From positions 496,001 through 560,000 of the forward strand of contig CAJFCJ010000011.1 in NCBI GenBank assembly GCA_904063045.1: a stretch of 64,000 nucleotides of DNA. Reading direction: 5' to 3'. Both the position numbers and the translations under genes were made by a program. This document shows positions 38,401 to 44,409 of the stretch, one piece after another (position 1 is the first letter of the stretch; each line of letters starts with the position of its first letter). The notes under the pieces are model-generated. The model saw nothing but the letters and a program-made list of their open reading frames with translations, ran no database searches and had not been told where the DNA came from. The DNA comes from Dimorphilus gyrociliatus. Lineage: Eukaryota; Animalia; Annelida.

Positions 38401-41400
38401 AGATAAAATAGAAAAATCACAAACTTGGTGAAATCTGTTAGTCCAAACAAGTTGTCTCGCCTCATATGCAAGTTTTCCAAGGTAAATCTATTAGTAGGGT
38501 GAGGGCAAATGTGTTTTTGTATTAGTATTAAAACATATCAACAAGTTAATAAGTAATTAGAGGTAAAATAGAATGATTAAAAGAAGTTAGCATGAGAATT
38601 GTTATTTTTTGCAATTTTGTAGTAGTCTAGTTTGCAATGTCACTCTCAAAATAATTTTTACCATATAATCCAAATAAGTTTTGGACCATGTACGGTGAAT
38701 GGACCAAGTTTTAGGGTATTCTTTACTGATACCGTGTAAGTAGCTCTATCAGAATGTATTTTGCTTATTATATCAAATACTTTTATTTCTTATTTTACAA
38801 GTCATTATTTCTAGTCAATTATTAGTGAAAATTACCTGTACTGTAGATCGAATGTCACCCATTGCTGGTACGCGAGAATAATAGCCTATACAAAGAACAA
38901 AACAAGCATATTCAATTAAGATCATTCATCAAAATATCAACTAACCTCTATTAGCGCAAGCAATCCATCTAACTGCGGCGTAAGGATTTGGTTGAGGACC
39001 AACCATATAAGTAAATATTCTAACTTTCTTTTCTGGCCAATTATAGTTTTCGAAAACCTCTTCTGCAGTATCCGTTCCTCCGTCAGTAAGAAACATAATT
39101 ACTTTGTTGCAATTAGCTCCTTCTAAATCCCCCTCATCCATTGACTTGTTGAACTAAAGTATAATAATACTAGGAAGACTATCTTTAAATAATTGTTAAC
39201 ACAAACTTCCTTTATCCTTTCAAATGCAAATTTAAAAGCATTGTTGTATTTTGCCATTCCCTTAGCTTGTAAATCGTCTATAGCTTTCAAAAGAACCTGT
39301 AATCAAATATTTTTTTCAAATTTTACGAGAGAATAATTAACTTGTAAATTTAGATTGATTAAACTTACTTGTTTATTCCTTGGGTTTGCTTGAACAAATT
39401 TTCGGAAACATCCTACATAATCCGCTTGATCTGAAAACTAGTATAAAAATTCTTCTTAAAAAAGAAATTTCGTACATTGACTTTCTCATGCGTACGTCAA
39501 GGTGTTTTCTACTAAGTGAGCATGCATCCTTCAACAGAAGGAAAAAATTGTATTTTTTTAAAGGGTCAGGCGAGGATACAAACTTTAATTAATCAAAAAT
39601 TTTATTTACATACTTAATTATGTACAGATAATGATAAACAAGGCACATACTCAATCTATTAATTCTGTATAAGACATTAATTTAAGGAATATACTATTTA
39701 AACTTATTTCTTATTACATATACTGTATATAAGAAAATATTTTTCAACATAAATAAATTTACAACTTGAACTTAAATATAATTATGATTCATTAAGGTCA
39801 TTACTATATAATAAGTGATGGATAATTTGACTTTTGTGACGTTTACTATAGAAAATTATGTATAATATAACATGCGCCAGTTACATATTTTATAAAAATT
39901 TATCTAAAAACTGAAAAAATTAAATAACGTAAAAATAATCTACTTTTGTGCGCCATATAAAAATGCACTGCTAGACGGATATTTATGGAAAGGGATTCAA
40001 CTTTTCGTTGTCCAGGAAAATATCCAATAAACTACATAGTTTTAAGATATAAAAATATTTTTTTTTAAATAAGAACGCTTCCATTGGACACACAAAAAAT
40101 GAATCATAAGTATTTAGAGAAGGTTATGGAGGTGTTTTCTTTTTCCATATTTTCTACATCTTCATAACATATTTATACTTTTACAGCCTTACGTTTGCTA
40201 CAGCGACATAATCATTTTGTCCAAGCGTGCTAATTAGAGATTTAGCAGTCTCTTTTATTAAAGATAAGGCTTGTCCATATGTACTTCCACTCCTTTGAAA
40301 GCCGCATAGGTAAATATAATTATAATATTTAATTTCATCAATTTGGTATAAGTCTCACATGCAAAAACACTTGGTGAAAATTTGCACTCAATAGAAAAAT
40401 CTTACGCTCAAGACAGAAACAAAATCATCTTCACTGAGTAAATCTAAAAATGACTTTGCAGTTTCCTTTATAAGTAATAAATTTTGACCCTGAGTGCTTC
40501 CACTCCTGATGAAAGATAAATGGTAATAATAAAATTTCTAAGTTTCTTTTTATAGAAATTTAAAAACATGGCATATTATACATTTCATTTAAAAAAGATG
40601 TATTGTAAATGTTCTCTCAAGAGATCTCTGATTTAATATGTACTCTATTATTAATCTCTTTGTAACGAGCAATAATGATGATAAATCCATTATTGTTTGA
40701 AATAGACGCTTCGACGTCACAGATTAAGTTCAAATTCCTTAGGCAAAATATTTCTACTTACGTATCTATAAGTATTAGCATGTCTTTTGGAGAACTGGCT
40801 CCCTGTGTGTACCAAGGACGTCTACGGACATCATATAAATCTGGTTCAATGTTAGACCATTTTATTCCTGAGGGGAGAAATTTTATTTTATAAGTTTTTT
40901 TTTAAATTCAATTATTTACCGGGAAAAACCCGCAGAACTCCAGTTTGACTTCCAAAATACTGCAATAGCATATTGTCATAGTTTTTAGAATTATTATACC
41001 ATACTTCATCCAACTTGTTCGTCCATTTTAAGTCATTCAATATGTGTAAATCTAAAATTATTTAACCTTTTAGAAAAAGCTCTAAGACATTTTTAATTGT
41101 TTAATACAAACCACCCTCATAAATTTCTACTGGAATATGAACGCTTGAAGAATTATATGAAACATTTCGCATAAGACGTTCCTCGTAAACGAAGCCTTCT
41201 TCATTCTCCCTAATATTCCGAGCATTCTTATACGAAACATCTTCAAGCTGAAAACATTCATATATTTAATGTGTAATAAAAATATAATTTATTAGCTCCT
41301 TGTGTAAGTTTGAATTTACCTTTAGGTTAGGATCGTAACCATGCTGACCAGCGTATTTTTCGGCCTCGTTAACGGCATTCTGTTCGAAGAATAAATGCAC

Positions 41401-41925
41401 TTTACGTAAGAAGAGAGATAAAAAAAAACATGCCTCTAAAGACTCGATTTTTTCTTGCAGTATTTTATGTAATTTGTTAGCCAGTTTTCGAACTAAATGA
41501 CTGCCGTCTATATCCAAAGTAGTCGCATCAAATTCGTTGACTTTTTCGTTGTAATTTTTTACAATTTTTTCTATTAGTGTGTTACTTTTCAAAAAATCCA
41601 ATAGTGTCTTTTGGAATTTTGCAAAAAGAGTTGCAAGTCTGTAATATGAAAGATGCATATACATAAAAATTGTAAGATTATTATTTGTAATGGTTGAAAA
41701 ATCTAAAAATAGCGGCACACGTTCTTTGATCATCATCGAGTTTATCATAAATAAATATATGTAGAGTAGTTTTGAATAGTAATTATTATACTTTCAAGAT
41801 TACACTAGCAAAGGAAATGTAATATATTATGAGTAAAAATGCACTTACGGATCGACACCCTGCACTCTCTCTTGGATAAGACTTACACAAAAAAACATAA
41901 TTAAAATCTTCGGTGTTAGATGCAT
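35440..41925 (-). CDS. CACNA2D: Voltage-gated calcium channel auxiliary subunit alpha2-delta; more than 20 exons
   Basis: Signal peptide [23 protein letters not shown]; [29 protein letters not shown] (MIDAS); [13 protein letters not shown]; [20 protein letters not shown]; LLDDGGFLV; [10 protein letters not shown]; GPI-type tail [22 protein letters not shown]. Confidence 0.95.
38425..38487 (-). CDS. CACNA2D: alpha2-delta alternative exon Y ([21 protein letters not shown]), duplicate of exon X
   Basis: CTAATAG acceptor, GTTTGT donor, phase 0-0; aligns to the same human segment (EYLDVL..KQVQWTNVYLD) as exon X. Confidence 0.7.
38662..38745 (-). CDS. CACNA2D: alpha2-delta exon X ([28 protein letters not shown])
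   Basis: Phase 0-0, canonical splice sites; retains the YLD of the dCache1 pocket. Confidence 0.85.
40193..40292 (-). CDS. CACNA2D: alpha2-delta VWA exon B ([33 protein letters not shown])
   Basis: 100 nt, phase 2-0, AAG acceptor and GTAAGG donor. Confidence 0.88.
40406..40505 (-). CDS. CACNA2D: alpha2-delta VWA exon A ([33 protein letters not shown]), duplicate of exon B
   Basis: 100 nt, phase 2-0, CAG acceptor and GTAAGA donor; same length and phase as exon B and clearly homologous to it. Confidence 0.88.
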
Positions 41926-42429: not shown

Positions 42430-44409
42430 ATGGCACATATTCAGCAATTATTAGATGCCTGTCGTTTGGGCGAAGTGAACGCTGTTCTGGCCCTACTGAA
42501 TCATGTTGACGTTAATGCTTCAGATCATCAGGGGGTTACAGCTTTACAAATGGCTTCAGCATGTGGTCGTATAGTAATTGTTAGGGAACTTTTAGCAAGG
42601 GGAGCGGCACTGGAGCAGGCAAACAACCTTGGATGGACGCCACTATTACACGCATGTAGAAGAGGTAGACTAGACGTAGCCGACATTCTCATTGCTAACA
42701 AGAGCAACGTCAATGCTAGAACAAAACACGGAACATCAGCATTAGTTTTGGCTGCACGGGGCGGCCATTCACTGGTAGTTAAATCCCTTTTAGACGCTGG
42801 AGTCGAAACATGGCCTCAAACTGCGGTGGACGTAACAGTGTGTGAAATTTCTGCACTAATGGCTGCCTCCCAAAAGGGACATCACTCAGTAGTTCGTCTT
42901 TTGTTAGACAAAGGTGCCGATGTAAATGCTCGAGCTCCGTCAACAGGCGTGTCCGCTTTAAGTTTTGCAGCTCTTTCCTCGAATGTTAGTTGTTGCGAAA
43001 TTTTAGTTCAGAGAGGAGCTGATCCTGACCAATATGACGTAAATGGAAGAACACCATATTACTTAGCTAGACACAAATCGGTCAAAGATTACCTTAGGCA
43101 AAGAACTGATGGAGCATCAATTGTTGATGACCAGATTAAAAGATCAGAACAAACCCTTTTTCTGCAAGCTCTTTTAGAAGGTGATACTCTAAAAGTAAAA
43201 TCATTTTTAGAACGAAACCCCTCCCTAGTAGACATTACTTTGACACAGCATGATGGAGCAACTCCTTTAATGCTAGCTGCTGTTAGGAATCAAACTGGAG
43301 TGGCTAAACTATTAATTGAGTATGGTTGCAATATAGATTCTCAGGACTCAAAAAATGGCTGGACAGCTTTGATGCAAGCTACCTATCACAAGTATGTATA
43401 TAGCTCTTTTTCTAAATAAATAATGCAAAAAGATTTGTTACAGTAACGAAGATATGGTTAGATTGCTTTTAGAATCTAACGCCAACCCTAGAATTGTGAA
43501 TCATGTGGACTTTACTGCTTTCGAACTTGCTACAATGAACATGGGAAATACTGAAATTTATCGATCGTTAGCCAAGGCTACTGACCCTAATTCTGGAGTT
43601 AGAGATGAGGCCAAGAAGAGATCTTGGAAGAAATTTCTTAGTAGAGTATCCTCTCGCTTTGGATCGACTCTACGTCCTTCATCTAGTCGCTTGTCATTAA
43701 ATTCTACTCAAACTATTGTTGAAGCAGATCGAACAATGTCTAAAAAAGAGTTTGATCGCGTTATGAAGGATAGTGAGAGACAAAGAAGAATGGCTGAGAA
43801 AATGGAGAGAAGAAAAATCGTTTCTGCTAAGTCAATGCTCGATTTAAGTGCAACACCTTCACCAGCAAGTCTTGCAATGAAAACCTGGGTAAGATTTATT
43901 TTCATATTGTGCAATTAGTCATGTTTTAAGGAAATTCGATATTCTTCTAGGCACCTGCTAAAAACCTAGGCTATAAAAGAAATTCTCAATCAACTTGTAA
44001 TTTAACTTCTATTGGAATGCGCAATCCAAACTGTAGTCCAGGATCATCTGCAACAGCTGTTGCTTTGTCTGGAACATCTAGTGGATCAAGCACGTTAACC
44101 AATGATCGGAATAAGCGAAAGCCATTGATTCATAGTCCACCATCGACAAGATCTCAGAGCTCTTTACCACTAAGTGAAGCTGTAGAGCATCTTGAAGATG
44201 AGGAAGATGTTGCTGGTGTTTTACGCCAATTATCTCTGCAGTCATATACTCCTGTTTTCGAAGAAAATGAAGTTGATATGGAGGCCTTTCTTACATTAAA
44301 TGACAAAGATTTATGCGAGCTTGGTATAAATGAATCATTAGCGAGAAACGATATACTAAGCGCCATAACCAGAATCTCAACTAGGAATCGAATATCTTCG
44401 CCTTGTTAA
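42430..44409 (+). CDS. ANKS6: Ankyrin repeat and SAM domain protein 6; 3 exons
   Basis: About 10 ankyrin repeats including DGATPLMLAA..GWTALMQATYH; C-terminal SAM domain FEENEVDMEAFLTLNDKDLCELGI..ILSAI matches ANKS6 rather than ANKS3. Confidence 0.88.

Follow-up and report, generated by a model that had tools for sequence, protein, structure and literature searches.

In a 64,000-nt window of the Dimorphilus gyrociliatus genome (contig CAJFCJ010000011.1, positions 496,001 to 560,000; coordinates below are those of the window), two adjacent and homologous 100-nt exons, A and B, lie in a calcium-channel alpha2-delta gene. We consider it very likely that they are a tandemly duplicated, mutually exclusive pair of dinophilid-lineage origin, one of which is present in each mature mRNA. 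The host gene, on the minus strand, is annotated as DgyrCDS8435 (protein P0152, 1058 residues) and DgyrCDS8436 (P0344, 1065 residues), with a 100% exon-by-exon match to the window. The exons encode part of the VWA domain, beginning within its MIDAS (metal-ion-dependent adhesion site), and the region is laid out as follows.

40762..40867, minus strand: upstream exon, constitutive, 106 nt, matches P0152 residues 205-239 at 100%
40506..40761, minus strand: intron 5' of exon A, 256 nt, weakly conserved
40406..40505, minus strand: exon A, 100 nt, unannotated alternative exon, acceptor ...tcatcag/, donor /gtaaga
40293..40405, minus strand: intron between A and B, 113 nt
40193..40292, minus strand: exon B, 100 nt, in both annotated isoforms, acceptor ...ttcaaag/, donor /gtaagg
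39438..40192, minus strand: intron 3' of exon B, 755 nt, 11 times the species median intron
39366..39437, minus strand: downstream constitutive exon, 72 nt, phase 0-0, joins to A or B

The first-pass annotation of this DNA had described two homologous exons of equal length and phase, 113 nt apart and each with a GTAAG donor, and reading of the minus strand bears this out. The upstream constitutive exon, which encodes VWA strand beta1 and the MIDAS Asp, ends in ...CTT ATA GAT AC/gtaagt at 40762, where AC supplies the first two bases of a Thr codon. A and B are equal in phase: base 1 of each completes this codon, and the other 99 nt specify a 33-residue peptide. Either exon thereby completes D-T-S-G-S, as had been claimed, and the peptides quoted at the time match the translation exactly. 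Exon A encodes the MIDAS Ser-Gly-Ser, helix alpha1 and strand beta2, matching human alpha2-delta-1 residues 261-292 from the Ser-Gly-Ser onward. The two peptides are identical at 19 of 31 residues (61%; BLASTP, E=7e-13) and differ at 14 of 33, while the DNA is identical at 60 of 100 positions.

The reading frame separates the two exons. When A and B are joined, exon B is read in the frame left by A and a stop follows after 16 codons, likewise in the diverged relative described below; when both are skipped, the exon at 39437-39366 is out of frame and a stop is reached within 9 codons. The earlier claim that including both or neither breaks the frame was thus confirmed by the stops found in each case. 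Each mature mRNA would then carry A or B, either of them joined to the constitutive exon at 39437-39366, with exclusivity enforced by the reading frame: transcripts with A plus B, or with neither, would meet an early stop and presumably undergo nonsense-mediated decay.

Selection was measured against a relative that was reached through a neighbouring 66-residue exon, a 97%-identical copy of which occurs in Logan assemblies of several runs. The comparison sequence, contig L011 (Logan, run SRR23372228; the same sequence is present in SRR23372216, SRR23372229, SRR23372231 and SRR23372232), is syntenic with the window at 35-50 kb, where the WD40, SAM/ankyrin and alpha2-delta genes stand in unchanged order and the DNA is 69-79% identical. 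The relative carries both exons, A at L011 8731-8830 and B at L011 8949-9048, each 100 nt long and with AG and GTAAG retained. There is accordingly a negligible chance that a single exon was written twice through an assembly or haplotype artefact: the pair's tandem arrangement, and nothing more, invites the idea, the copies are merely 60% identical in DNA, and the same layout recurs in independent Logan assemblies of several runs of another species.

Using the Nei-Gojobori method (NG86) over aligned codons, we estimated synonymous and non-synonymous divergence (dS and dN) and their ratio, omega (dN/dS), together with the binomial probability (P) of so few non-synonymous changes under neutrality. 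Exon A differs from its orthologue by 8 synonymous changes and 1 non-synonymous change (dS 0.57, dN 0.013, omega 0.023, P=2.6e-5); over its full length, with the last codon that the local alignment had dropped added back, the tally is 9 synonymous changes with a single replacement, of Ser by Asn, and 32 of 33 residues are identical. Exon B shows 11 synonymous and 5 non-synonymous changes (omega 0.089, P=1.4e-4), and the remainder of the gene has a dS of 1.30 and an omega of 0.066. In the upstream constitutive exon, 33 of 35 residues are the same in the relative. At the DNA level, exon A matches its orthologue at 90 of 100 positions and exon B at 83 of 100. The 113-nt intron separating the two agrees at 67 of 120 aligned columns (56%), 9 columns being gaps, and the 256-nt intron 5' of exon A gives short scattered matches only, the splice-site regions excepted. 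The dN/dS comparison of each exon, which the first-pass annotation had proposed as a check, places both A and B under purifying selection at the protein level, as would be expected of mutually exclusive exons.

Because the changes in exon A fall almost solely at third positions while the neighbouring introns barely align, exon A appears to be translated in frame; and since that frame reads through only without B, it would be a working coding exon that replaces B. Translation of exon A, taken with the early stop that follows from both exons or neither, makes a mutually exclusive pair the best reading. With both copies kept by selection, A and B very probably give the worm two versions of the protein.

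We weighed whether exon A might instead be a poison exon or an RNA element, conserved for something other than its protein, whose inclusion with B would create a premature stop and lower the amount of alpha2-delta. The stop that follows A plus B in both species fits such a role, as do the lack of A in any annotated isoform and the 5' half of A, which is unusually calm at synonymous sites and able to pair with the intron. However, exon A has 10 substitutions, of which 9 are synonymous and at third positions, and 32 of 33 residues have been kept at a rest-of-gene dS of 1.3, in a frame that is read only without B. A poison exon would, moreover, have no need of MIDAS serines or of hydrophobic residues patterned like a VWA helix and strand, and we regard this explanation as improbable.

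The same measurements bear on a further alternative, in which B is constitutive and exon A, a dead duplicate, is a pseudo-exon left out of every transcript. We judge this very unlikely, given an omega of 0.02 and splice sites and length that have been kept where the adjoining intron barely aligns. The annotation of B alone and the blank protein-fragment search with exon A (below) would suit a dead duplicate, but the single-exon paralogue of the gene has no recognisable relic: a search for a second exon copy in the flanking introns of DgyrCDS4704 (contig C6) gave Smith-Waterman scores at shuffle level. Unused exon copies are therefore not preserved here. Furthermore, exons A and B have diverged from the outgroup consensus to much the same extent (18/33 and 20/33, respectively), which argues that A is not a decaying copy.

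The mutually exclusive reading has to be set against several observations that speak the other way. Exon A is in neither annotated isoform, and a word search of the public protein collection with its 49-residue open frame matched no fragment. The support for exon A comes from selection and not from direct RNA evidence, and that selection was measured against one relative only. The 90% protein cluster of DgyrCDS8435/8436 comprises the two annotated isoforms and no further members.

We also considered how the choice between the exons may be made. The median intron of the species is 66 bp (PMC7854359), and the gene's other introns mostly measure 52-75 nt; at 113 nt, the A-B intron comfortably exceeds the size that this organism splices, so exclusion by steric hindrance does not apply. 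A search for long-range pairing between docking and selector sites, of the Dscam type, gave many inverted repeats, which are too frequent in this AT-rich DNA to be informative; none is convincingly common to both species, and only a local hairpin at exon A stands out. In this hairpin, a stretch of the A-B intron (40403-40372) is complementary to the 5' end of exon A. The predicted duplex, with energies of -19.4 kcal/mol (D. gyrociliatus) and -24.2 kcal/mol (relative), is better than those obtained with shuffled introns (P=0.026 and 0.008, respectively); the 340-nt region as a whole folds better than shuffles (z=-2.6 and -3.2).

GCAUG is the recognition element of RBFOX proteins. On the sense strand, the introns of the gene contain four GCATG motifs (the one at a GC donor excluded), all of them in the two introns that flank exon B, and three of the four are kept in place in the relative, where they are the sole such motifs of that gene. 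One is part of a TGCATG at 40363-40358 in the A-B intron, +43 from the donor of exon A; the GCATG itself is at +44, as against +42 in the relative, where the 3' arm of the hairpin extends into the GCAUG motif. In the 755-nt intron, the longest conserved internal block, GAAGGATGCATGC at 39532-39520, holds a GCATG about 90 nt before the next exon, and a second conserved motif, GCATGAGA at 39491-39484, lies about 55 nt before it. Exon B has a weaker polypyrimidine tract than exon A, yet B is the annotated form.

The GCAUG motifs and the hairpin around exon A hint at a regulated choice. Taken with the splice-site strengths, they suggest that exon A could be masked by default and freed by a GCAUG-binding factor: it would normally be sequestered by pairing with the downstream intron in a hairpin, and in some cells be released or activated through an RBFOX-type factor binding beside the 3' arm or partly within it. 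A lineage-specific switch of this kind, in which the hairpin-masked exon A, with its stronger 3' splice site, is unmasked by such a factor in certain cells, for example neurons or muscle, is possible but on balance doubtful. The paralogue DgyrCDS4704, which has a single exon, contains two TGCATG motifs 20 nt apart in the 931-nt intron after its MIDAS exon, about 77-97 nt before the next exon (L006 2434-2459); this matching pair means that the downstream GCATG pair is not specific to the A/B choice. A Fox-1_C family search of the genome gave no match, but the controls were likewise without a match. Inverted repeats are plentiful, at the level expected for AT-rich DNA, and the synonymous calm in the 5' half of exon A reaches only a P of about 0.02. 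Were the switch real, the exchanges between the two peptides described below, namely the Q/Y and N/A swaps and an acidic patch, would be a natural experiment on the choice of alpha2-delta partner.

Alpha2-delta subunits, the targets of gabapentinoids, govern the trafficking and gating of CaV1 and CaV2 channels via the VWA MIDAS. We used an AlphaFold model of the B isoform P0152 to place the differences between the exons (mean predicted local distance difference test score, pLDDT, 73.6; 64-79 across the exon's segment). In this model, the exon B segment starts with the last part of the MIDAS loop (240-245) and continues through helix alpha1 (246-261) and a loop (262-266) into strand beta2 (267-273). 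Three of the 14 differences between A and B are near the MIDAS end: Q/Y at position 5, N/A at position 8 and L/S at position 10. The uncharged Q/Y and N/A swaps are the only ones that adjoin the MIDAS, and the remaining eleven differences are in the last turn of helix alpha1, the alpha1-beta2 loop and beta2. The net charge is -3 for A and 0 for B, in both species, the extra acidic residues of A being D21, E25 and D26. Positions 21, 25 and 26 map to the C-terminal end of helix alpha1 and the alpha1-beta2 loop, some 16-21 residues from the MIDAS loop; by VWA topology, the acidic differences would face away from the MIDAS and the channel. Thus, of the first-pass claim that A is more acidic at or near the channel-binding surface, the charge difference is real and kept in both species, and the location is not supported by the model, which puts it far from the MIDAS.

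The literature agrees that the MIDAS contacts a loop of CaV alpha1 domain I, as had been stated (PMC5655503; bioRxiv 10.1101/2025.10.07.680875). In CaV1.1 and CaV1.2, Ser261, Gly262 and Ser263 lie against an Asp of the repeat I S1-S2 loop (PMC5655503; bioRxiv 10.1101/2025.10.07.680875; PMC10761187). The channel-contacting Ser-Gly-Ser is identical in A and B. We propose that the VWA domain is intact with either exon and that its MIDAS Ser-Gly-Ser does not change; the suggestion that the choice between them tunes CaV1 versus CaV2 is pure conjecture. If both versions are made, a single gene can supply two functional forms of the stretch from the MIDAS loop through helix alpha1 to strand beta2, and the 14 positions, conserved isoform by isoform across two species, are candidate sites for adjusting how the subunit interacts with the channel or other partners.

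We next turned to the age and distribution of the duplication. Genomic loci of Ridgeia, Owenia and Lamellibrachia, like that of the paralogue DgyrCDS4704, each have a single copy of the 100-nt exon with identical boundaries, an old unit by this distribution. Among the isoforms listed for nine mollusc genera and the ribbon worm Lineus, every one has a single, B-like version of the 33-residue segment. An ancient origin of the pair is ruled out by the single copies in these annelids and molluscs and in Lineus. A and B together were found only in Dimorphilus and its relative; in the environmental contigs L017, L020 and L021, related exons are present and the part of the gene with A and B is not covered. 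Judged from these sequences, the duplication is lineage-specific and would have arisen in the dinophilid lineage.

A tree built from the 33-residue segments unites the five dinophilid sequences (support 89/91). Exon A and its orthologue sit together on a long stem (0.48 changes per site) followed by almost no change, and B groups with the paralogue (support 86/77); an alternative with A and B as a sister clade was not rejected by the approximately unbiased (AU) test (p=0.198). This shape is consistent with a history in which a tandem duplication gave rise to A and B, after which exon A would have diverged fast and then been frozen by strong purifying selection. At two sites, E/Q at 25 and F/Y at 28, A retains the outgroup state, which tentatively favours an exon duplication older than the split between the paralogues.

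A third alpha2-delta-like gene of the worm, on contig C20 (1147302-1147397), has a single copy of the MIDAS exon, which reads SGSMTGLRMAIAK.... It resembles SGSM-type sequences among the more distant matches and is probably of the alpha2-delta-3/4 type.

Tandem-duplicated, mutually exclusive exons are well known from calcium-channel alpha1 genes (PMC8205089, PMC11828482). Like CaV1.2 exons 8/8a, CaV2 exons 37a/37b and the pairs of Drosophila cacophony, A and B are equal-length tandem exons that would be used one per transcript, swapping a structural element and keeping the fold. Unlike the alpha1 pairs, they belong to an auxiliary subunit, alpha2-delta, where they affect the VWA domain at its MIDAS, and they occur only in a small annelid lineage. 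In the open-access literature searched, no mutually exclusive pair was described in any alpha2-delta subunit; the splicing is of a well-known type, but in such a gene it seems to be undescribed. The kind of finding is not surprising, as mutually exclusive exons derived from exon duplication are common in channel genes.

Each CACNA2D gene has multiple splice variants (PMC12303104). The worm exons resemble vertebrate CACNA2D splicing in affecting the same protein family and altering the extracellular alpha2. Vertebrate alpha2-delta-1 variants are short cassette inserts (regions A, B and C) outside the MIDAS segment, whereas the worm gene would swap a whole VWA helix-strand unit. On the regulatory side, exons 5A/5B of C. 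elegans egl-15 are mutually exclusive exons controlled by RBFOX/ASD-1. They share with the worm pair a conserved (U)GCAUG in the intron between or beside the alternative exons; unlike those of egl-15, the worm motifs are known from sequence alone, and two of the three are also present in the paralogue that lacks the pair.

A second duplicated alternative pair, exons X and Y, is located within the same gene at 38425-38745 on the minus strand and accounts for the sole difference between P0152 and P0344, both of which carry exon B. X (84 nt) is in P0344 and Y (63 nt) in P0152; unlike A and B, the two are unequal in length and both annotated. Of the four possible combinations of A/B with X/Y, the annotated isoforms represent B+X and B+Y. 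With exon A, the D. gyrociliatus gene model would gain an unannotated coding exon, and this compact gene, carrying both A/B and X/Y, would lend itself, at the size of a minigene, to studies of how exon choices are coordinated. Contigs of the L011 type, from a compact genome, similarly offer a useful comparison species for findings in the D. gyrociliatus genome.

The identity of the host gene was assessed from P0152. Its closest named relatives are labelled alpha-2/delta-2-like or -1-like, and its Pfam matches to VGCC_alpha2 (144 bits), VWA_N (91) and VWA (51) each exceed the cut-off, with dCache_1 (43.9) slightly below its cut-off of 45. The match to the solved alpha2-delta-1 chain 8if3_A has E=1.6e-144, compared with only E=5e-15 for CACHD1, and residues 32-952 align to 7mix_D and 5gjv_F. 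On these matches, DgyrCDS8435/8436 is classified as an alpha2-delta-1/2-type calcium-channel subunit. Of the DxSxS part of the MIDAS, the Asp (D238) is in the constitutive exon, and the S-G-S present in both A and B is invariant across 30 homologues. T348-D349-G350, also invariant in the homologue alignment, probably include the Asp of the two distal MIDAS residues, which are Thr and Asp in human alpha2-delta-1. The last ~20 residues of the protein are hydrophobic, in keeping with the C-terminal hydrophobic or GPI-signal segment of alpha2-delta subunits, and are modelled as a helix (1042-1057).

In its P0152 form the gene comprises 29 coding exons and extends over 6.5 kb, exons A and X being additional; most introns measure 52-75 nt. 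One of its introns, at 41380-41433 on the minus strand between P0152 residues 94 and 95, starts with GC (GAG/GCATGT...) and ends in ...AACAG; it is 54 nt long and in frame. The relative carries GAG/GCATGG at the same intron (L011 7778 onward), making this a conserved GC-AG intron whose retention would preserve the frame. On the opposite strand, the neighbouring gene at 42430-44409 (plus strand) encodes ankyrin repeats and a SAM domain; its DNA is 79% identical to that of the relative, well above the alpha2-delta gene overall.

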